A stretch of 64,000 nt of DNA from Takakia lepidozioides (taxonomy: Eukaryota; Plantae; Bryophyta): the NCBI GenBank assembly GCA_030704615.1, contig CM060733.1:61752001-61816000 (forward strand). The letters run 5' to 3'. The notes below the pieces were generated by a model that worked only from the letters and a program-made list of their open reading frames with translations, had not been told where the DNA came from and ran no database searches. A program made the translations under genes and the position numbers. Positions 12,301 through 59,534 of the stretch are shown here, piece after piece (position 1 is the stretch's first letter; each line of letters opens with the position of its first letter).

Positions 12301-14634
12301 TTGCGTATGCTGGCTCTCAATGAGGCCTCCATGGCAACCATGGCTGTCAACTGCCCGGACTTGAACCAAATTCAACTGGTATTTGCCACTCTCTCTGAAA
12401 CGTCTCTGCTACTTTTGCATCAACATTTGAAATGCTCACTCAGAAATATACTCTCCTTCTGTCAGCATGGTCTTATTTATTCACTTCATAATTGGTCTAT
12501 CTGCCAACTGGATCATCTTTGCTTTGTTTTCCTTACATGGTGGTTACATCAGTCTGGAAACAGGGTAGTTTGTTGTATTCCAGAAAGAAAGAATTGCTGA
12601 TGAGGACAGATTCTTTACAGTTGACAATTGTGCCGAGGATGGGGGAGGAGAAAGGGGCAGTTCGGTTCCGTGCTGATCACACCAAGTTTGAATCTCAATC
12701 TGTCAGGTATTGGCCCTCTTGAACATTGACACTCATTTCAGGTTCAGGAGATTTGCACCTAATGTGAACCTAATGTGATTAGAAGGAGACATGTATATAC
12801 ATCCACGGGAGGCCAGAGGGCACATTGGAAGAGAGAGATAGCGCTGAAGTGATATAAAGTTGACATACTGTCCGTTTGTGGGATTTCTACCACTAGGTGT
12901 GAAATGCCTGAAATTGCCATGGCGCTAGCTCACCGCCAACGGTAACCTGAATCAAGAGTGATGCTCTACTCCTGGATACAGTCACAGATGTGACACTGCA
13001 GATGCAGTGTCTGGAGAAGGGCAGAGCAAGGAGTGCTCTGGATAGGTGTCTCAAATGCAGTTTTCTATTTCTGTGCACTATAGTTTCCTACTAACTGTAT
13101 TTATCCTTGCCCAATGGGGCTTCGCAGCCGGCAGGGAATGCTGGACTACATCACAGTGCAGCTGGCGCCACGTGCAGCTGATGAGCTTTGGAATGGTGCT
13201 GACCAGGTCTGTACGATCCTTCAGCCTGCCATTAATTTTTTGCTGCGAAAAGTTTCAGACTTTGTTAGGAGTTGTGTATAACCTTTGTTACTTGGGGGAG
13301 ATAGAGAGATGACATGGACACATAATGGCTGGTATTGTTTAAGAAATCCTCCTCACCATTTATCTCACGTGCAAAATCGTAACCTGCATGGTCTCTTGTG
13401 TATGAAATATTTTTTGAGACCCTGCGGCTCTTGCCTATTTAAGGGGATAGGGTTGGCGTACAGAGGTCTTAAAGGCCTAGTGATCCAGTTATTTATAGAC
13501 TTTAGGACAGGATCCAAGTGCTTTAGGTGGGCTCCAGCAGTGCAAATGATCTACTAACTGATTTTGCAAGCACAAAAGTGACTCTAACCCTTTAGCTCTT
13601 TAAGAGGAACTCTCTAATGGGACCAGAGATGTATGATGCTGGGCTGGCAGATGAGCACCATATGGGCAGATACAGTGGACCAGGCTCGCAGCACCGCACG
13701 TGACTTTGTGTTTGCAGGCCTTTCTGACCGGGCTGACCTTTATGGCCTCTTTGACTGTTGGAATGACTATGACCGTGTAAAGGTACTACTTCCTCCCTGA
13801 CACCTTGCCCTGTGGCTACCTCTGTCCATTCCGTTAGGGAATCAGTCTAGTGCTCGTGTCATCTTGGGCCCATATGTGGAATCCTTGCTTAATCTGTACA
13901 TGGATACTCTGACATACCTCAACTATTTCTAGCTGTTGCTGGTACAAAAATTGTTGCTTTACACAGCTACAAGCTGATGAAAGAGTTTAGGGTATTCTGA
14001 ATGATCTTGTGGTGTGATTTTTGTCACAGGCAGTGGATGTTGAGGCACTGAAAATTGTGGAGAACTGCTATCAACGTGCACTTGAGGTTAGCCGGCCCCG
14101 TCTAAAATACTTTTTACTAAATGTTGTTTGACTAGCTAGATTATGTTCCCACTGTGACTTTGATAGTCAACATTCTGCTTCTATCTGTCATACACTGTAG
14201 GCAATGGTGTACTCTTAGCATCGTTGTCACTGGCTTGACTAGGATGTCAATAATCGGACTTCATATGAAGTAGAGCTCCTTGAAGTATCTGGTGTGAACC
14301 TCCCCTTGCAGTGGCCATAGGAAATCTTTCGAGTACCTATATTCACCAGAATTTGGAAACCGCTGTCAAGGTATAGTCCAGACATCTAGACAACAAAGTG
14401 ACATTCTGTTGGGTGTTATATTAGTTTTTGCAGCGGAACCGGGACCTGGTTGATGAGTTGGTGGAGTGCCTGGTGAAAGATCGGGTCATTCGGCAAGCAG
14501 AGTTTGCACAGTTCGTTGATAGGTATGGCAACCTCGACAAGCCAGCTCCATCACCCATGGAAGTACGGAATCGTGAGCTCGCAGTCTTCCAGGAACAAAT
14601 GATTGCGCAAAAGCGTAGTTCCCATGGTGTGTAG
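3344..14634 (+). CDS. FTSHI2: Inactive ATP-dependent zinc metalloprotease FtsHi2-like, chloroplast (14 exons)
   Basis: GT-AG exons joined in frame: 3344-3658, 3901-4989, 5154-5271, 9802-9975, 10215-10387, 10836-10937, 11038-11202, 11478-11618, 12220-12378, 12621-12706, 13128-13206, 13651-13782, 14030-14086, 14425-14634. Motifs: RIPYTDIL...KVKHIIK (FtsHi2 N-domain), Walker A GEPGTGKT, Walker [31 protein letters not shown]. The HEXXH zinc site is replaced by NEASM. The first exon and start are least certain. Confidence 0.92.
5439..6607 (-). mobile_element. 5'-truncated APE-RT LINE (family A) in FtsHi2 intron 3
   Basis: ORFs 6124-6708 and 5445-6065 (YLGVEF; [15 protein letters not shown] zinc knuckle; ends KATANNVL*) match the full copy at 40336-45168. 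9-bp TSD CAAGAGAGA at 5430-5438 and 6608-6616. Confidence 0.9.
6829..9745 (-). mobile_element. Degenerate, internally deleted LINE (family A) in FtsHi2 intron 3
   Basis: 3' end TGTACTCATAAGAC at 6831. RT pieces (MFVDDLAG, 7886-8070), linker (8500-8877) and APE pieces (NSNGKRL, SIVDY, 9168-9740) are colinear with the full copy, interrupted at ~8070-8470. Confidence 0.85.
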
Positions 14635-48307: not shown

Positions 48308-48789
48308 CACCCATGCAAAATAATTCCTAGCAGCGCTTAATAACTTGGTCTTATGTCTTACTGGTATTTGCATGCAGGCCAAGCAATGAACATAGAGTGG
48401 CTTTGGCAGCGGTTCAAGTCAGAGCTGTGTGACAAGGGTGTCAAGAAGGTGACTCTATGTGTATTGTGACCCAATGCTTTTAGCATTCAGATCAGAAGGA
48501 ATGGATGATGTTCTCAGTTGCCCAGGTTAATGGTCGTTGCTCGTCGTTCCTTGAGTAGGAGCTCTTCTTGTGAATCAGTCGGCTCTTAGTTTTGCAACAT
48601 TTTGTTTTGTTGAAAGTTGTTGTCTGGTCTATATGGGCTGTGGGTTGGAGCTATGGCTGCTCAACTGCACACTGGTGGTTTTCACAGATAGGTGCAAGAT
48701 ACTTATGTCATAAGCCCCCAAGGGAGGTCCTTTGTATCAAGAGTTGGTCCAACTCCCACTCCCCTTGGGTGAAAGCAGACCTAGCTGCC

Positions 48790-51392
48790 ATGACACAGGA
48801 TCGAGCACACTCTGGCATTGGTTCAAAATTTGATGTGCACCACGGAGCTCCAGATCAAGAATACAAATGGTACTGCCTTGTGGATGATAACTCAACAGTT
48901 CTACATCAGAGACAAAATTGCAACGGTTTCTTCTCCAGAGAGGATGGATTTCAGTAGTTATGGAATACTGTTGATTATTAGCAACATGCCAGGGATCTTT
49001 CTTGTAGTAATTGGGAGCGTATACTGTCAAAGAATTTTCTCAGACTAAGAGATCTGAGTCATGCAGGATAACAGGGTGGAATCATGCACGATATCTCGTT
49101 GCACATCAGAATAGCATCAGTGATAGCACTGCTGTCACCACTGCTTTTGAAAGAGACCCGGTCAATCGCAGGTATTCTAGCGCTTATGTGGATTTGAGAT
49201 CATTATGTAAGGAGGGACAACTGAAAGAGGCGCTGCACATTTTGAACCAACCAGGCATTCGGGCAGACTCCAACACTTACGTCTGTCTCTTGCAGGGTTG
49301 CATCAGGAGGAAAGCCCTAGCAGAGGGAAAGCAGGTGCACTCCCATATTGTCCTAAGTGGGTTCAGTCCATGCATCACCCTAGACAACACCCTTATCAAC
49401 ATGTACACCAAGTGCGGTAGCGCAGTGGAGGCACACCAAGTGTTTGACAAAATGCCTGAACGAAATATGTTTACGTGGAGTATGATGATTGCAGGATTTG
49501 CTAAGCTTGGGCTTGCTGAGAAGGCTTTCAAACTCTATGAGAAAATGCAAGGGGAAGGGGTAACACCCGACAAGGTGACATTCACTTGTGTTCTCAATGC
49601 ATGTGCCAAGCTAGGAAGCCTGGAAAGAGGGCAGCGGGTCCATGCTGACATCATCAAAACTGGAATTCTGTCAGACGTTACTTTGGAGACAACCCTTATT
49701 GACATGTATGCCAAATGTGGAAGCATAATAGATGCTCGGCAGATGTTCGATAAAATGGTGAAACGAAATGTGGTCTCATGGACCGCAATGATTGCAGGAT
49801 ATGCCAAATGCGGTAGCATGAAGGATGCACTATTATTATTCAACACTATGGCTGAAAGAAATGTGGTCTCATGGAATGCCATGATTGCAGGATATGCTGA
49901 GCATGGACATGGGGAAGAGGCTTTGAAAATGTATGAGCACATGCAACGGGAAGGGGTTATGCCCAATGTGATCACGTTCATTGCTGTTCTGAACGCGTGT
50001 GCCAGCCTAGGAGCACTGGAAATGGGCAAGCAGGTCCATAGTAACATCATCAAAACTGGAATTAGGTCACCAGTTAATTTGGAGAATACCCTGATAGACA
50101 TGTACAGCAAATGCGGGAGCGTGATGGAGGCACTTGAAGTCTTTGATAAAATGGCTGAAGTTAATGTGGTGTCATGGAATGCTATGATTGCAGGCTATGC
50201 CCAGCAAGGGCATGGTGAACAGGCATTCCAGATGTATGAGCAAATGCAACGCAAAGGGGTGATACCTGATGGGGTCACATTCATATGTGTTCTGAATGCG
50301 TGTGCCAGCCTAGGGGCTCTGGAAAAGGGTAAACGTGTCCATGCTGACATCCTCAATACAGGAATTGCCCCATGTATAAATTTGAAGACCTCCCTTGTTG
50401 ACATGTTTGCCAAATGCGGGAGCCTAAAGGATGCACGTCAAGTATTTGATACAACGACGAACAGAGATGTAGTCTCATGGAATGCCATGATTTCAGGCTA
50501 CTCCCAGCATGGGCATGGTGAAGAAGCTTTCCGAACTTTTGAGCAAATGCTACAGGAAGGCTTGAAGCCAGATGGTATCACCTTCATGTCTCTTCTCTCT
50601 GCTTGTAGCCATGTAGGCCTTGTGGATGAAGGCCATCTCTATTTTCATTCCATGAGTCAAATTCATGGCCTGACACCTATGGTGGGCCATTTTGGGTGCA
50701 TGGTGGATCTTCTTGGCCGTGCAGGCCGCTTGGATGATGCAAAGGACTTAATTAAGAACATGCCAATCAAAGCAGAAGCTTCTGTGTGGCGGGCCTTGCT
50801 AGGTGCCTGCAGGGTTCATGGTGATGTGGAGCTAGCAGAATGTGCAGCAAACTGGATTCTCAAGTGGGATCCACAGCATGCTGCAGCTTATGTGCTGCTC
50901 TCAAACATCTATGCTGCAGCTGGCAGGTGGAATGATAAAGCAAAGATAAGACAAATGATGCAGGAAAGAGTTCTCAGAAAGGAGCCAGGGCGCAGCTGCA
51001 TTGAGATGAACAACCGTGTGCATGAATTTAATGCAGAAGATAAAGTGCATCCAGAAATCGAGGAAATCCATGTTGAGCTCAAGAGATTGTCTGGACAGAT
51101 GAGGGAGGCTGGCTATGTGCCTGACAACTGTTTTGTATTGCATGATGTGGAGGAGGAGCAAAAGGAATGTTCTCTTGGCCACCACAGTGAGAAGCTGGCC
51201 ATTGCTTTTGGGCTCATTAGAACACCCCCTGGAACGCCAGTCCGCATTATCAAGAACCTCCGGGTGTGCAGTGACTGCCACACCGCAACCAAGTTCATCT
51301 CAAAGATTGTTGGGCGAGCAGTTGTTGTACGGGATGCCAACCGCTTCCACCACTTCCAAGATGGAGTTTGCTCTTGTGGGGATTACTGGTGA
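48790..51392 (+). CDS. PLS-E1-E2-DYW pentatricopeptide repeat protein (organellar C-to-U RNA editing factor, DYW:PG type)
   Basis: Open frame 49011-51392 with 15 PPR motifs (including one SS), E1/E2, PG box KEPGRSCIE, HSEKLA, CSDCH and terminal DYW. There is no ATG before the first PPR motif; proposed exon 1 is 48790-48869, spliced to 49067 (uncertain). Confidence 0.93.
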
Positions 51393-53617
51393 CACACTCA
51401 ATATGCAACATGAAAGGGAGTGGTTGCTTGAGAGGTGCGGGTGGAAAGGTTATGGTCTGCTGTCAGTAATTTAAGCATCACATCGCGAAAAGAAGAGCCT
51501 GCACTTGCCTTTGTGATTCAAGACAGGCTTCCCAAATGTGAAGAAACAAGTGGTGTGATCATATGCAAGAGCGAGGAGCTCATTTCTGGTGAGCTGCTGA
51601 TGGTGATGTAAAACAAAACCTTACTGTAGAGGAGACCATCTACAATCACAAGGACAACTAGTCATGAAGAAAGCCCTGGAACAGTGGGGGTCCTGAAAGT
51701 GGACCTGATGCTTTGAAAAACGATTGATGAATTCCAAAAGTTCCTTCGAATTTCCAGAAAAGCTGGAGAGGGCCATGCTTGTCCAAAGTGGGAGATGGTC
51801 CTCCTCAACATGTGTGATTGGTTTTCCAGTATTGAGAATACTTGAAAGGCATGGTTGTGTGCGTATAAGGCAACTTGAAGGAAGCAGACTCTTGAATCTC
51901 GTCTCAAATTAAAGTTAAGGAACATCACTACCTCACCATGGAGATTCTCGCTGAAATTTGTTATTATTGTACACACAAGGAACTGGATGCAGGGCTAGAC
52001 AGAGTCAGCTTAGTCTAAGATCAGCCTGCTTAAATGATTTTCAAGCTCCTCATGTATTTTTCTCAGATGGTAGAGGGGTAGTAAAGATGGGCAAGGTGTT
52101 GTTGCCTCTTCTCTGCCACCAGCCATGAAGTGGATCGGTAACATTTACTAGGTTGGGAAACATTGAGGAACAGTGGGGGTCCTGAAAAGCTGATGGTGCC
52201 CATAGTTCCCCTAGGAACTGAAAGTGAACTGCACATACACACACAATACACACCTACCTCAAATTTGATGTATTCTAGTTATTCCCAGAAGGATACATCC
52301 AGAGGTAGAAGGTTGAGACCCTGATTCTTCCCAAATATGCTGTGTAGGTGCAATTCTGTGGCTGACGAGTCATTAGCACAGTTGTAAATAAGTGAATTTG
52401 CAACCCAGGAGAAGGCTTATCTGCAATGGCGATGATGAGCTTCCTTCAGTGGATGACCTGGGAGGTCATTCAATCAAATCCTAGCTTGAACTCTTTAGAC
52501 TATAAAGTTTCTGTTATTGCACAAGCCACACAGTACTGCGCTTGCCAGCTCTCTTTTTCCGATCTGATTTTTTCCTCTGATCAGTATACCAAATCTTTCC
52601 AACACTGTATGCCAAGCTGCAAAGTCAATTTTGTTCTATTATGCTGTTGTCAGAGCTTAATGAGATGTTACAATATTCTCTCTTCTCAATGTGGGAATCC
52701 TCTGTGTACATAGCATTCCATTGATACGGATGAGATGAATACTATGACTTTGTTATCTCCTCGGAGGTTGATTAGACTTGCTTTGTTTCCTTGCTCTGGG
52801 AGAATCTCTGTTTCTTTCTTGAGCTCAAGCAACCTCTGAGGGACTATGTAGTATACTGAGTATACATTTTGTGTATTTATCTAAAATGAGCTGAAAGCTG
52901 TATTCTGCGTGTAAACTTCTCCCAGGTCCAAGAGAACATACAACTGGAGCTTCGTTTACTTCAGAAATTGGTACTCCAAATTTTGTGTATTTAATCAGGT
53001 GCCAAGACGTCGAAACTGTTTATGTGCCCCTGTTGGGAGAGAAAGCAAGTCCTATTTCATAACCCAGCTTTCGACATTGACAGTAAGGGTTTAGCTTCAA
53101 GCTTACGCATGCATTGAGTGTGGAATCCTGCTGCATGAGAAACTTTTGCTTCCCCCCCATTGGCAACAACTACTTCAAAGTTCCATTTTCAAAAATCTCT
53201 ACACTTTGACCTTCAAAAACATTTCAAGTGCAACAAACATTTGCAAAATGTCACTTACTGTATTTTCTGCTTCAGTCTCTGTGAAGGCACATTTAGCTCT
53301 TAAACAGACCCATAGAAAGAAGTCTCACCTTGGAAAGAAGCTGTGCATGTTCATTGATGTTAAACGCTGGCTATGCTCACTCTGCCCTTCAAGTTAAATC
53401 TCAAGATGGTGGACACAGGGCTGATGCCTAGACTGTGTAGGGCACCTCAAAGTTAGTTCCAAATCAATCAAAAGTTGCATTCCATACCCAACACTTGACC
53501 AACAACTGTTTTAAATGTTTCTAGTGACAACTAGAACTGCAAAACTGCAGCATATCTACTGCATTTGTCACTCTGGCGCACAAGGTGCCCCACTGAGAAC
53601 AATCAGCCCATAACTCT

Positions 53618-55357
53618 TCAGGACTTGTCGCTAAAAGAAAGAACAGGAATCAATACGTCTATTTGAGTTTCTTGGGTTCCCACCTCCAATCTTTCTTGGA
53701 ACTTGGTATCGTTGCACTTGAGCATCCATGCAAGGCTGCATTTGACTCCTTTCTCTGTAATCTGTTCATAACGTGGCCGTATTCTATTGTCCAGACTGTA
53801 TGTGAAGTACATTGGGAACTCCACCACGTCTTTCACATTTCGCTTCATCTCTTCCACCAAAAAATCCAGACTGGGTTTTAACATTTGGTCAATGCTCAGG
53901 GCCAGCAATTGTGGGCACGCAGTTACCATCTGACCAACATCTTCTGCTGAAAATCCAGCCTGCCTCAGAAAATCTACCCTGGCTGTCCCCAATGGCACAT
54001 TTATTACAAGGATTTGTGGGAGTTTTTCCAAGATTTGTCCCATACTGTCTTCTCTGATGCCCACTATGGAAGTGAGCCATGGCAGTTTCTCTGCCAGTTT
54101 TACCTTGACATCTAGTCCCAGGACTTCTGGAAACTGCACAAGAAAGTGCGCTATGGCCTCCCTTTTCACCCCTATTTCCAGCAAACTGTCAACAGTAGGT
54201 CGCATCTGGTCTGCCAATCCCAACCCCAGTATGAAGGGCTGCTTCTCGATCATCTTTGAAATGACTGGCCTAGGTATGCCAAAGCTTATTAGGTAGTCGA
54301 CCTTTGGTTTGATGTTATTGCCAACGCGCATACCCAGAATTTCAGGCTTCTCTGTTAGGATACCACCTATCTCTCTGGGATTCACACCAATCATGACGAG
54401 GTAAGCAATCGAGGTGCTCATCGTTCCTTCAATGTTGAAACCAAATACATCTGGATACCTTGTCAACACACTTCCAAGCTGCTTTAGCTGAATGCCCAGG
54501 CCCTGCAGGTAGGTCACAATTGGTTCCAAATCGACAACCACACTCGCATGCAATATCCTTGGGTACTTCCGTATTAAAATGGGTAGAGAGTTGGTGGTAA
54601 TTTTCAGAGATTCTAGGTAGTTGAGGACCGGAATGAGGTTCTTCTTCACACTGCAACCAACCATGAGGGGATAATCATTTATGTCGCTTACTGTGAGACC
54701 AATTTTCGTCAGGAATTCTACGCGTTCTCTCACAACCTCAAGAGATGTTGGAAGGTCCACACCTTCCAGTTCGCTGCTATCAATGCCCTCGCTGCGCAAG
54801 TATTCCAACACCACCTCCTGATCCGTAAGGTGTTTTCCATAATCCTCAACTTCTCCCGCCGTTACACTTGGTTCCGCGAATGCATAAGCGGCTAGGAAGG
54901 GCACTGTCGTTAACATACTCCTTGATGAATGATGCGATTTATGTATCCTGTAAAACCCTAAACATCTACAGCTACTTTTAAGGCCTGTTTCCATGCTGCT
55001 GGAAGAACTGCGTGCTTGTGTCTGTTTTCCTTCTGCCAACGCTTTCGCGTTCATGCACCCCTGCCCCAGACAGACATAAGGATAAGAGTTTGCCCGAACA
55101 CCACGTCGCAGAGCCTCCTTCAGTCTCCCCTCCTCACAGAACCTCCTCACATCCTCAAGAGTTCCAGCCTTAAGCTTGATGACTCGCTCTCTTGGGCATG
55201 TCCTAAAAATGGTGGTGATGGCTGACGCGCTACTCCCAGTCTGATGTCCCATCAACATTTGTCGCTGATGTGAACCTGCCATCCCGCATGACTCACAACT
55301 TCTGGTTACAAGTTGTGGTTGGAAACATCCAAATACCTCTGGAGACCTGGTAGACAT
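53618..55357 (-). CDS. MTERF4: mTERF4/BSM/RUG2-like mTERF protein with PPR-derived N-terminal extension
   Basis: 579-aa intronless ORF. ERVEFL..GLT..DINDYPLMVGCSVKKN, ILHASVVVDL, FNIEGTMSTSIAYL and FTYSL...KCSLAWML are mTERF4-type signatures. Residues ~8-115 align with the N-termini of the PPRs at 49011 and 56889. Confidence 0.88.
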   Translation of the reverse strand: MSTRSPEVFGCFQPQLVTRSCESCGMAGSHQRQMLMGHQTGSSASAITTIFRTCPRERVIKLKAGTLEDVRRFCEEGRLKEALRRGVRANSYPYVCLGQGCMNAKALAEGKQTQARSSSSSMETGLKSSCRCLGFYRIHKSHHSSRSMLTTVPFLAAYAFAEPSVTAGEVEDYGKHLTDQEVVLEYLRSEGIDSSELEGVDLPTSLEVVRERVEFLTKIGLTVSDINDYPLMVGCSVKKNLIPVLNYLESLKITTNSLPILIRKYPRILHASVVVDLEPIVTYLQGLGIQLKQLGSVLTRYPDVFGFNIEGTMSTSIAYLVMIGVNPREIGGILTEKPEILGMRVGNNIKPKVDYLISFGIPRPVISKMIEKQPFILGLGLADQMRPTVDSLLEIGVKREAIAHFLVQFPEVLGLDVKVKLAEKLPWLTSIVGIREDSMGQILEKLPQILVINVPLGTARVDFLRQAGFSAEDVGQMVTACPQLLALSIDQMLKPSLDFLVEEMKRNVKDVVEFPMYFTYSLDNRIRPRYEQITEKGVKCSLAWMLKCNDTKFQERLEVGTQETQIDVLIPVLSFSDKS

Positions 55358-55384
55358 ATGTCCTCGTGAAATGGGCAGAGTTCA

Positions 55385-55730
55385 GAGCCTATTGAAGGTA
55401 CTTGAGCGCGTGGTGAGAGACCGGGTGACTCGGCAAGTAGCAGAGCTTGCCTAGCTCAACTACATGTATGGCAATCTCGACAAGATCTGTCACCATTCAT
55501 GTTCGCCATCTCTGTCACCTCGCAGCCGTCCGCAAGAGAAAGTGTACGGTCGATCAAAACACGATGTTTCAAAAACAATCCCCGTGTGCCAACGATGAAT
55601 CCCTTGATTTCCTAACGGCTTTACGCCTTTAAACGCCTTTAAACGCCTTTAAACTGCGATCACACCATCCATATCCATATCCATATCCTACAAATCAGCA
55701 AAGAGCATCCGAACCATGTTTTAATCTACT
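55385..55730 (+). pseudogene. Degenerate duplicate of the FtsHi2 last exon and 3'UTR
   Basis: TGGTGAGAGACCGGGTGACTCGGCAAG..AGAGCTTGC...GTATGGCAATCTCGACAAG matches ~14471-14541. GAGAAAGTGTA matches ~14652. AGAGCATCC.AACCATGTTTT matches ~14853. Confidence 0.8.
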
Positions 55731-57089
55731 TACAAGCTTTCAACAGTTCTACTGCCTGCTCAATAATCTCGTTAAGGAATCCATTAAGAGAATGTTGTAA
55801 TGAAGCAGGGGATGAAAGAAGTCGGCATCGGAGGTATAGTTTGTGGGTCTCAAGTCTCAAGTCTCACGGAAAGCGAAGCAGCAATCTAGAGGAGAACCAG
55901 AACGTTACCTGTGCCCTACACTGGAGCCATGCAGGCTCAAATCTGTCCTTGCTCTGATACCAGCAGAAGCACTCATCTTGGTCCAAAAAGTCCACGGGAC
56001 TGTCAATCAAGAGGTGCGAGAAACGCGAGTATAACCGAACCCCTTGTCCCACTCCATCAGCGTCTTCTGCAACATCTGCAAGTACTGGTAAAATTCTGCT
56101 CCCGGCCATCCATTGTAGATGTGTGTCTGTGTTTAACAACGACCTTTTAGACTTTACTTGCCGTTTGGGCGGAGTAGGAAAGGCAAGGAGAGGGAACAGA
56201 GGAGAGCAGAATGGATGCCACTGCAGTCGCGATTGGTTCGCCCCAGTAGTGGGACTAGGCAGATGAGTGTGGGAGTGTGAGGCTGCCACTTTCATATAAG
56301 ATCGTTTTGAGACATTATGCAATCACAAGCTGGCCTCATCGGCGACAAGTGCCAGTCTGATACCTTGCCAATTGCTGGGCTTGCAGCACAAATGAACATA
56401 CCGAGGTCTACTCTTTGGACCATTGCAACACCTGCAGACCAAAAGTGGCATGGGACGTACGAGGCAATGAACTGAAATTGTACTTGTATGCAGGCCAAGC
56501 AATGAGGATAGAACAGGAATTGATGTCAGATCTTTCCCAATCGGATAACAATTCTGTAAAGGTGAGGCCGTCTGTTTCGCTCGCCTAGCTTGTACTGGTC
56601 TTAGGAGGTAAATGGACAGAAAGGTCCCTGTTCTGACACTGCCATGATCATACATTGTACATGGGCCACAGTTACAGTTGAATACAATCAATAGCAGTTC
56701 GTATTGGTGGATCACGAAGTTGTAGAGTGACAAGTTGGATGCTCAAAGTTGGGTCCTGTTTGAAATATGCTTGGGAGCTTGGATGGTGGTGGTGTCAGTC
56801 GGTACAAGGCTGGAATCTATGCGGTGCCTGCTGAGCTGCACAATGGTGGTTAGCACAGAACTAGGGATTGAGAGTAGTTTGACTAGCCTTGGGTGAAGGC
56901 AAGGCTAGCTGCCATGACACAAAGTCAAGCAAAATCAGATGGAGGGTGGAAATCAGAGTGTGGTTTGAACTTTATGGTGAATATGCTCCCTGGAAGTCTC
57001 TAGACCAGAGTCGTTTGGGTGGAAAGGCAGATTATCTGGGATCTTTCAAATTACCAAAAGTCTTAACTAGAAATGTTGAGTCATGCAGG

Positions 57090-59534
57090 ATGGCAAGGTC
57101 ACACCAGGGACGAAGGCTTGTTCTACATCCGACTGGCGGCTGGGGTAGTACCTCCACCACTTTCAGTAGAGGACCAAGAGAGAAAGGCAGCAACATTACA
57201 GCTGACACTCTTGGGGATGTGAGGAGACTATGTAAGGAGGGAAGTCTGAAAGAGGCTCTGCACATCCTGGAACAACCAGGTGTTCGGGTAGACCCCAATA
57301 CTTATGTTTGTATCTTGCAGGGGTGCGTCAACATGAAAGCACTGGCAGAAGGAAAGCAGTTACATGCACACATTCTCCAAAGTGAACTAAGGCCAGACAT
57401 CTTTCTTGGTAACAGCCTTGTCAACATGTATGCCAAGTGCGGGAGCATGGTGGATGCTCGACGAGTGTTTGATGAAATGCATCAACGAGACGTACTCACG
57501 TGGACTACGATGATGGCAGGATATGCCAAGCGTGGGCGTGCCGAGGAGGTTTTCAAAATTTATGAACAGATGCAATGGGAAGGGGTGAGGCCCAACAGGG
57601 TCACATTCCTATGTGTCCTCAATGCAAGTGCCAGCCTTGGATCCCTGGATAAGGGCAAGCAGGTCCATACTGACATCATCAAAGCTGGAATTGTGTCATT
57701 TATTAATTTGGAGAATACCCTCGTTCACATGTATGCTAAATGTGGGAGCATAAAGGCTGCACGTCAAGTTTTTGACATAATGGCAAAACGAGATGTGGTC
57801 TCATGGAATATATTGATTGCCGGATATGCTCAACATGGGCCTGCTGAAAAGGCTTTCAAAATCTACAAGGAAATGGCACAGGAAGGGATCTTGCCTGACA
57901 GGGTCACATTCATTTGCCTTCTCCAGGCATTTGCCAATATAGGAGCCCTGGAAATAGGCAAGCAGGTCCATGCAGACATCATCAAAGCTGGAATTGCCTC
58001 AGACTCTATTCTGGAGACAGCCCTTCTTGACATGTATGCAAAATGTGGGAGTGTAAAGGATGCGCGGCAAGTATTTGATAACATGGCCAAACGAGATGTG
58101 GTGTCATGGAGTGCAATGATTGCAGGATATGGCCAGCATGGGCAAGGTGAAGAGGCTCTTAAGATCTATGAGCAAATGCAACAGGAAAGAGTGACGCCCA
58201 ACAGTGTCACTTTCATTTGCATTCTCAATGCTTGTGCCAGCCTAGGAGCTTTGGAAAAGGGCAAGCAAATCCATTCTGACATCATCCAAGCTGGAATTGT
58301 CCCATGTCTTAGTTTGGAGAACACCATTGTGGATACATATATGAAGAGTGGAGGTTTAAAGGATGCGCATCAAGTGTTCAACAAAATGGCTAAACACGAT
58401 GTGGTCTCCTGGAATGCAATGATTGCAGGGTATGCTCAGCATGGGCATGGTGAAGAGGCGCTTAAAATTTATGAGCAAATGCAACATGAAAGGGTGCTAC
58501 CTGATAGGGTGACATTCATTTGCACTCTCAATGCATGTGTCAGCCTAGGAGCCTTGGAAAAGGGCAAGCAAGTCCATGCTGACATCATCAAAGCTGGAAT
58601 TGCCTCATATCTTAATTTGCAGAATGCCCTTGTAAACATGTATGCCAAATGTGGGAGTGTAATGGATGCACTTCAAGTGTTTGACGAAATGATCAAACGA
58701 GATGTGGTCTCATGGAATGCAATCATTGCAGGTTATGCTCAGCACGGGCATGGTGAAGGTGCTGTTCAAATGTTTGAGAAAATGCAAGGTGAGGGGGTGA
58801 AGCCTGACGGCATCACCTTCATTAGCATTCTCAATGCGTGTGCCACTCTCGGAGCCCTGGAAAAGTGCAAGCAGGTCCATGTTGACCTCATTAAAGCTGG
58901 AATTGTGGCAGACGTGAATGTGGAGACAGCCCTTGTTGACACATATTGCAAATGCGGGAGTGTAGAGGATGCACGGGAATTGTTTGATAAAATGGCTAAA
59001 CGAGATATGGTCTCATGGAGTGCGATGATCACAGGATACGCCCAGCATGGGTGTAGTAGAAAGGCTCTGAAACTCTTTGAACAAATGCAACAGGAAGGCT
59101 ACAAGCCTGACGGCATCACCTTTACTTCTGTTATCTCTGCATGCAGTCATATGGGTCTAGTTGATGAAGGTTGTCACTACTTCCATTCTATGTGTCGAGA
59201 TCATGGCCTCCCTCCTACTGTGGAGCATTTTGGCTGCATGGTGGACCTTCTTAGCCGTGCAGGACGATTGGATGAGGCAGAGGAGCTCATAAACAAAATG
59301 CCAATTGAACCAGGGATTGCGGTGTGGATGACGTTGCTTGGTGCCTGCAGACTTCACAGCAATGTGGACGTTGCAGAACGTGCCGCAAAAAGAATTCTTA
59401 AGAGTGATCCTCAGGACAGTGCCGCTTATGTGCTGCTTTGGAATATCTATGCTGCAGCTGGCAGATGGGATGATCGAGCAAAATTGAGAAAAATGCTAGA
59501 GGATGGGGTGTTGGAAAGGAGCCCAGTGTATTGA
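57090..59534 (+). CDS. PLS-E class PPR protein (20 PPR motifs, E1-E2, no DYW)
   Basis: Open frame 56889-59534 with first ATG at 57090. L-S-(P-L-S)x5-P2-L2-S2, then WMTLLGACRLH (E1) and AYVLLWNIYAAAGRW (E2), ending ERSPVY*. Confidence 0.92.
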   Translation: MARSHQGRRLVLHPTGGWGSTSTTFSRGPREKGSNITADTLGDVRRLCKEGSLKEALHILEQPGVRVDPNTYVCILQGCVNMKALAEGKQLHAHILQSELRPDIFLGNSLVNMYAKCGSMVDARRVFDEMHQRDVLTWTTMMAGYAKRGRAEEVFKIYEQMQWEGVRPNRVTFLCVLNASASLGSLDKGKQVHTDIIKAGIVSFINLENTLVHMYAKCGSIKAARQVFDIMAKRDVVSWNILIAGYAQHGPAEKAFKIYKEMAQEGILPDRVTFICLLQAFANIGALEIGKQVHADIIKAGIASDSILETALLDMYAKCGSVKDARQVFDNMAKRDVVSWSAMIAGYGQHGQGEEALKIYEQMQQERVTPNSVTFICILNACASLGALEKGKQIHSDIIQAGIVPCLSLENTIVDTYMKSGGLKDAHQVFNKMAKHDVVSWNAMIAGYAQHGHGEEALKIYEQMQHERVLPDRVTFICTLNACVSLGALEKGKQVHADIIKAGIASYLNLQNALVNMYAKCGSVMDALQVFDEMIKRDVVSWNAIIAGYAQHGHGEGAVQMFEKMQGEGVKPDGITFISILNACATLGALEKCKQVHVDLIKAGIVADVNVETALVDTYCKCGSVEDARELFDKMAKRDMVSWSAMITGYAQHGCSRKALKLFEQMQQEGYKPDGITFTSVISACSHMGLVDEGCHYFHSMCRDHGLPPTVEHFGCMVDLLSRAGRLDEAEELINKMPIEPGIAVWMTLLGACRLHSNVDVAERAAKRILKSDPQDSAAYVLLWNIYAAAGRWDDRAKLRKMLEDGVLERSPVY

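Follow-up and report, generated by a model that had tools for sequence, protein, structure and literature searches.

An mTERF4-type gene with a PPR-derived 5′ end in Takakia lepidozioides: a transcribed, probably lineage-specific chimera

Does an open reading frame (ORF) that begins like a PPR editing factor and continues as an mTERF4-type protein belong to one working gene, or has it stayed open by accident? The question is raised by positions 53618-55357, reverse strand, of a 64,000-nt stretch of contig CM060733.1 of the moss Takakia lepidozioides; the whole stretch is called the window, and all positions are counted within it. The ORF is a PPR 5′ fragment joined in one open frame to an mTERF4-type gene. 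We consider it, with a probability of roughly two thirds, a real, expressed and lineage-specific chimera in which the 5′ end of a PPR gene overwrote the start of the mTERF4 transit peptide and which is translated from this leader. The anatomy of the ORF, its homology to a donor, a remnant of the native gene and unspliced RNA across the junction were observed directly.

The protein contains a single, complete mTERF domain at aa 245-554 (Pfam PF02536, E 2e-99, profile positions 1-314 of 314), as the initial annotation had predicted. An AlphaFold2 model showed a confident helical solenoid for aa 164-563. For aa 1-163 the predicted local distance difference test score was below 50 nearly throughout, with short helices predicted at 67-85; the low confidence fits a flexible presequence, weakly, since the alignment had no depth in this part. 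In an alignment with 12 MTERF4 proteins from bryophytes (11 from mosses), the core was strongly conserved from the motif FAEPS (aa 160) on, and every residue invariant in these orthologs was present in the chimeric protein. Database searches yielded 584 matches to the mTERF part, 120 of which were listed. The best of those listed had 66-69% identity, several coming from environmental or run assemblies, and none reached 90%. Next in rank were Ceratodon, Physcomitrium ('MTERF4, chloroplastic'), Sphagnum, liverworts and lycophytes. Moss proteins named 'transcription termination factor MTERF4, chloroplastic' were 54-69% identical over aa ~130-579, and the top named matches were MTERF4 of Physcomitrium and of many angiosperms (E 1e-161 to 1e-124), the subfamily being assigned by match ranking. 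With mTERF4/BSM/RUG2 (At4g02990; maize Zm-mTERF4) the chimera has the full-length mTERF solenoid in common and, as in mosses, an intronless coding sequence (CDS) with a Leu-Gly-Phe motif encoded by a telo-box. In domain, closest relatives and these gene features it agreed with mTERF4 in everything tested except the extreme N-terminus: the distal part of the transit peptide region (aa ~116-158) is native, but the first ~115 aa derive from a PPR gene. The C-terminus is shorter as well: the protein stops ~20 aa past the core (53618-53690), and most of the acidic tail of other moss MTERF4 proteins (PDVPY.., a DE-rich stretch) is missing. In maize and Arabidopsis, mTERF4 proteins promote the splicing of group II introns in chloroplasts (Hammani and Barkan 2014, as cited in PMC9459714). 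The mature chimeric protein would keep the role of an organellar nucleic-acid-binding factor of the mTERF4 type.

The leader originated in a PPR gene. Over residues 7-115, the chimera showed 51% identity (pairwise, E 3e-32) with the N-terminal end of a divergently oriented PPR ORF, 56889..59534, called PPR57k here after its coding exon at 57090, and a third, more distant copy was found at the head of the PPR-DYW gene 49011..51392. The colinear alignment of codons ~8-115 with both PPR N-termini, as initially described, was reproduced, and so was the open frame of 579 aa across a small deletion, 12 nt (4 aa) long and in frame relative to the PPR donor relative. The two other frames of the leader contain 5 and 6 stops. 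On the nucleotide level, 55004-55330 corresponds in inverted orientation to 57376-57039 with 71% identity over 342 columns; the ungapped arms of the inverted repeat are 74-78% identical. Homology is confined to 55004-55330 versus 57039-57376, and no long palindromic duplication spanning both genes was found. Within the window, PPR57k is the closest donor-like relative of the leader. The homology begins ~50 nt inside intron 2 of PPR57k, placed by a spliced RNA contig; the copy includes intron sequence and therefore arose from genomic DNA, and a retroposed PPR mRNA is ruled out as its source. The 3′ splice acceptor of this intron has changed from AG to GG in the copy, so the formerly intronic stretch is now read as exon and as codons, in frame behind ATG 55357. 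By alignment the leader holds one degenerate PPR motif, which carries the 4-aa deletion, and half of the next. No Pfam family was found in aa 1-121 at E<=0.01, and the earlier label of a partial L motif was not confirmed. Two PLS-class PPR genes in the window are homologous to the leader over their start codon, presequence and first degenerate motif, but the chimera has no PPR array, no E motif, no DYW domain and no confident leader fold; it is not a PPR protein. Queried within the full-length frame, aa 1-125 had no match at E<=0.01 in a collection of 5.8 billion sequences, from which the organism's own proteome is apparently absent. Among the 120 of 584 matches listed, all covered at most 82% of the full-length query and left its first ~90 residues uncovered, and no mTERF4 relative covered the leader. 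The same fusion was found in no other species of this database, which seemingly lacks the organism's own proteome; the result does not imply absence in close relatives. The chimeric gene is, in this sense, lineage-specific, and it is expressed.

Expression was followed in RNA contigs of two runs from two studies (X1, X2), placed on 52900-57300. Record 1 of X1, 2191 nt long, covers 53310-55500 colinearly with 0 gaps and 2 mismatches and spans the junction. In X2, record 8 (53337-55092) and record 14 (55070-55350) match with 0 mismatches and overlap by 23 nt. Run X1 also holds a spliced PPR57k contig with canonical GT..AG borders and has zero depth in the PPR57k intron bins; its contigs therefore represent RNA, with negligible carry-over of genomic DNA or pre-mRNA. 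As evidence that would speak against a chimera, the initial annotation had named transcripts with a start or splice event downstream of 55010, for instance at TTTTACAG near 54948. The X1 contig crosses this region unspliced and X2 reaches 55350, and the colinear X1 contig rules out splicing at TTTTACAG or elsewhere in the leader for the transcripts seen. Runs X3 and X4, from other organisms in the same study, gave matches of 47-50 nt in the core only. One contig in each RNA run joined ~55083 to ~56936 on opposite strands (shorter side 33-35 nt, likeness threshold 80); these contigs are probably mRNA of PPR paralogs cross-mapping onto the inverted leader copy.

The linker between the PPR part and the mTERF core had been taken for a 5′ untranslated region (5′UTR) on account of its telo-box. 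The telo-box at 54953-54961 and the in-frame ATG 54916 are both present, but the comparison with other mosses led to a different interpretation. A profile hidden Markov model built from the N-terminal regions of five moss MTERF4 genes matched aa 111-158 with 7.7 bits, and 2 of 1000 shuffles scored as high. The BLASTP alignment with Physcomitrium MTERF4 ran up to the junction. Directly behind the PPR part, the run A-R-S-S-S-S-S resembles A-R/K-G-S-S-S-S of Ceratodon and of the moss gene L009, at equal spacing to Leu-Gly-Phe (LGF), and a basic-x-LGF motif common to most aligned moss MTERF4 proteins aligns with C-R-C-L-G-F-Y of the chimera. Judged from these similarities, the linker is a leftover of the N-terminal coding region of mTERF4 itself and not a captured 5′UTR. 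With a native coding remnant in this place, the event would have replaced part of the transit peptide and not added a leader to a 5′UTR. The proposal that an mTERF4 copy captured a PPR N-terminus holds for the chimera in one frame, but not for the mode of addition.

The telo-box itself, AAACCCTAA, reads TTAGGGTTT on the gene strand and encodes Leu-Gly-Phe. These residues were encoded by TTA GGG TTT in 6/6 moss MTERF4 genes, while neighbouring codons varied. Its distance from the ATG was +202 in L002, +166 in Ceratodon (L006), +175 in the Physcomitrium paralogs L007/L008, +166 in L009 and +136 in Sphagnum (L010), compared with +396 nt in the chimera. The CDS of all six genes is intronless, like that of the chimera; in the 5′ CDS of Marchantia MTERF4 the telo-box was absent. 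Its place inside the CDS of moss orthologs and the score of the linker model rule out the telo-box as a 5′UTR marker. The retention of TTAGGGTTT, including synonymous sites, from Sphagnum to Bryopsida amid a poorly conserved transit peptide suggests that a DNA element within the gene, not a motif of the peptide, is conserved. This conservation inside the CDS of moss MTERF4 is the most original by-product of the analysis. The 9-mer is identical to the telo-box, the short interstitial telomere motif to which TRB proteins bind (Schrumpfova et al. 2016; PMC12616469 for moss). Where telo-boxes have been described, they are most frequent immediately upstream of transcription starts, in Physcomitrium at -50..0 (PMC12616469), whereas here the motif lies in coding sequence. 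Moss MTERF4 offers a concrete locus for asking whether TRB-bound telo-boxes act inside genes, and if this reading is true, conservation of a DNA element can pass for a 'conserved peptide motif' in a transit peptide. Exact telo-box 9-mers occurred 8 times in the window (0.54 expected; 0/100 shuffles reached 8), at 2989, 16640, 54953, 60285, 60292, 60613, 63154 and 63276, several of them clustered at 60.3-63.3 kb downstream of PPR57k.

From these parts the following course of events can be proposed. An mTERF4 gene lacking introns would have received, in its 5′ coding region, an inverted DNA-level duplicate of the start of a PLS-PPR gene. The duplicate would have comprised the tail of the last 5′UTR intron, the start codon, the presequence and one degenerate PPR-like motif together with half of its successor. 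Having landed in frame, it would have displaced roughly 35-50 codons from the beginning of the native transit peptide, leaving in place the remaining native N-terminal sequence with its intragenic telo-box as well as the whole mTERF solenoid. The loss of the acceptor (AG to GG) would have left the message unspliced, and with it the frame open from ATG 55357 via 55282 into mTERF4. Translation would yield an mTERF4 protein that owes its extreme N-terminus, on which organelle import depends, to an editing-factor PPR. An import function of this leader is presumed, and the destination of the protein may have changed.

On the only transcript form observed, a scanning ribosome would meet five in-frame ATGs (55357, 55282 and three more) and several out-of-frame ones before ATG 54994; initiation downstream of the leader is therefore predicted to be inefficient on this mRNA. 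A start at 55357 or 55282, reached by ribosome scanning, appears most likely, and the latter, homologous to the PPR start codon, stands in a strong context. Counted from this M26, the first 40 aa contain 4 Arg, 2 Lys and 8 Ser/Thr with the first acidic residue at 32. In this composition, and only composition is compared, they resemble the PPR57k leader with its 5 Arg, while canonical Bryopsida MTERF4 N-termini are Arg-poor (0-3) and rich in Ser/Thr/Ala (9-14 Ser/Thr). In simulations, a 93-codon frame at 14% branch divergence stayed free of stops in 26% of the cases; the open frame, two indels of multiples of three and an in-frame junction have a joint chance of ~0.01 under neutral drift.

Several observations weigh against translation from the leader. 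This joint chance is overstated by ascertainment bias, the locus having been chosen for its open frame. ATG 55357 stands in a weak context (catATGt), and three further ATGs precede it in the 5′ leader of the mRNA. The ratio of non-synonymous to synonymous substitution rates (dN/dS) between leader and PPR57k was 0.70, and ~0.57 on the leader's own branch; neither is distinguishable from 1. Presequences are in general under weak evolutionary constraint. The contigs show neither strand nor true ends, nor rare or alternative isoforms and start sites. The peak of Physcomitrium telo-boxes at -50..0 makes an internal transcription start near 54950, giving a leaderless isoform, conceivable by analogy. 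Database searches found no ortholog with the same fusion that would demonstrate its retention over time.

Several of these points suit a second explanation, in which the PPR fragment, a fairly recent insertion, is a transcribed 5′ leader only, its frame is open by accident and the protein starts at 54994 or 54916 via leaky scanning, reinitiation or an internal start. Constraint on the leader is indeed indistinguishable from neutrality, and complex leaders are tolerated at this locus, with upstream ATGs in the chimera and 10 of them in PPR57k. The telo-box lies 37 nt upstream of ATG 54916, which is reminiscent of motifs that peak just upstream of Physcomitrium starts, but its position within the CDS of canonical orthologs deprives it of value as a 5′UTR mark. 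The N-terminus from M122 is basic and rich in hydroxylated residues and could be a short presequence. Yet a protein from ATG 54994 (M122) would have 38 aa ahead of FAEPS and one from 54916 (M148) 12 aa, where 78-105 aa precede the core in other moss MTERF4 proteins. The initial annotation had correctly seen ATG 54916; its figure of ~30 aa left by the last ATG fits neither distance, and M122 had been missed. A ribosome would, in addition, have to pass the five in-frame and several out-of-frame ATGs of the sole transcript form seen, including the strong one at 55282, and the indels of multiples of three with the in-frame junction (joint chance ~0.01) would have to be fortuitous. Overall, we regard a purely untranslated PPR fragment as unlikely.

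Much less probable is that the locus is one of two mTERF4 copies, damaged by a rearrangement and on its way to loss though still transcribed, so that the chimera as such would be functionless. Contigs 82-87% identical in nucleotides over 54230-54877, present in both X1 and X2, indicate that another mTERF4-like gene is expressed. One of them continues for ~630 nt upstream with no match to the window, which fits a paralog with a different N-terminus; two further sequences, P0001 and P0002, were rejected as in-genome paralogs with 67-69% nucleotide identity and belong to other species. Physcomitrium has three mTERF4 homologs according to PMC9459714. Besides redundancy, decay could account for the shortened acidic tail and for the pace of change in the leader: with the copy at 49 kb as outgroup, parsimony assigned 37 changes (13 synonymous, 24 non-synonymous) to the mTERF branch and 20 to the PPR57k branch, a ~1.8-fold difference. 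A decaying gene would hardly present an intact frame of 579 codons, the full-length Pfam match, all invariant residues, a confident solenoid model and RNA in two independent studies, however, and the leader branch, at ~14% divergence, implies a long survival during which the frame stayed open. That an assembler misjoined PPR and mTERF sequences through shared k-mers, as a leader family with up to 22 paralog contigs at 57243 and the contig break of X2 at 55070-55092 might suggest, is scarcely credible, for genome and independent X1 contig agree on the junction, the 71-78% identity to window paralogs makes the k-mers locus-specific, and the X2 contigs on either side match perfectly and overlap.

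A chimera translated from its PPR leader is a fresh example of a known route, the gain of a presequence by duplication of an existing one. A change of the N-terminal address is one of the few ways to shift a function among chloroplast, mitochondrion and cytosol. To our knowledge, well-documented natural address changes with donor, exact junction and RNA support are few and mostly concern genes newly transferred from organelles. The presequence of rice rps11 was reportedly acquired by duplicating an existing targeting signal, as Kadowaki et al. are said to have described in EMBO J in 1996. As in presequence acquisition by duplication or exon shuffling, a nuclear gene for an organelle protein supplied another gene, in frame, with a copy of its N-terminal targeting region, with an identifiable donor family and an in-frame junction in the mature mRNA; exon shuffling has been described for cytochrome c1 (Long et al. 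1996) and by Vibranovski et al. (2006), both as cited in PMC7456531. The present case differs in that the recipient was not a newly transferred organelle gene but already had a transit peptide, which was partly overwritten, and in that the join lies within a single exon and not at an intron. Peculiar to it are also the dead acceptor and the intron piece within the frame between ATG 55357 and 55282. Donor and recipient alike are nuclear genes serving RNA processing in organelles, and the family that supplied the leader is hugely expanded in this genome; a reservoir of ready-made presequences and promoters may therefore exist in PPR 5′ ends. A more far-reaching scenario appears doubtful at present: after an mTERF4 duplication, the chloroplast-type transit peptide of one copy would have been overwritten by the more basic PPR presequence, sending the protein to a different organelle or to both, and expression would have been coupled to the editing-factor cluster via the 260-bp promoter, amounting to neofunctionalisation. 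Separately, and with the same reserve, the telo-box of moss MTERF4 might function as a regulatory element inside the gene, with the peptide constrained by it and not the other way round.

Table 1. Coordinates of the chimeric gene, its parts and its neighbours in the window
Feature	Position	Strand	Remarks
Chimeric mRNA per RNA contigs	53310..55500	-	~143-nt 5′ leader, ORF, ~308-nt 3′UTR; no intron
Chimeric ORF	53618..55357	-	579 aa from ATG 55357; 554 aa if started at the PPR-homologous ATG 55282
mTERF domain	53696..54625	-	aa 245-554 (Pfam)
Native mTERF4 N-terminal (transit-peptide) coding remnant	54883..55012	-	aa ~116-158, abuts the PPR part directly
Telo-box	54953..54961	+	AAACCCTAA; gene strand TTAGGGTTT = Leu-Gly-Phe codons; conserved at DNA level in moss MTERF4
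PPR-derived segment	55004..55330	-	inverted copy: last ~50 nt of PPR57k intron 2 and first ~288 nt of the coding exon
ATG homologous to PPR start codon (M26)	55280..55282	-	strong context gggATGg
Former 3′ splice acceptor, dead	55284..55285	-	GG here, AG at 57087-57088 in PPR57k; side-by-side sequences, no joint in RNA contigs
5′ leader of chimeric mRNA	55358..55500	-	upstream ATGs: 55500 (14 codons), 55496 (35 codons), 55465 (ATG-TAG)
Gap between divergent RNA contigs	55501..55760	.	260 bp; candidate bidirectional promoter
PPR57k 5′UTR	55761..57088	+	two GT..AG introns (299, 527 nt; intron 2 ends AG 57087-88); X1 record 4, 0 mismatches
PPR57k coding exon	57090..59534	+	814 aa, PLS repeats and E motif, no DYW
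PLS-E-E+-DYW PPR gene	49011..51392	+	distant copy of leader

The mRNAs of the chimera and of PPR57k lie head to head, with contig ends at 55500 and 55761 (Table 1). A promoter common to both genes is plausible from this arrangement, and co-regulation of the chimera with PPR57k is suggested circumstantially by the head-to-head layout. The gap between them contains repeats at 55625-55690, the 10-mer CCTTTAAACG three times and CCATAT three times. The spliced PPR57k contig consists of the blocks 55761-56086, 56386-56559 and 57087-57300; the coding exon opens one base before ATG 57090 (..CATGCAG/GATGGCA, the slash marking the border). In the spliced mRNA this is the first in-frame ATG, with a stop one codon upstream, and it opens the frame of 814 codons behind a 5′UTR of 503 nt. 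Up to 22 distinct RNA contigs of the organism, less than 90% identical, piled up on the PPR leader and first motif (57163-57300) with a peak at 57243; a large expressed PPR family therefore has this N-terminal module in common. Many paralog contigs have in common a short element at 56887-56936, which matches 48763-48797, a site upstream of the DYW gene, at 88.6% identity; it is apparently an alternative 5′UTR exon in members of the family. In the 5′ leader of the chimeric mRNA, the 81 nt at 55404-55484 are 75% identical to 14464-14541 in the window and may represent a small dispersed repeat.

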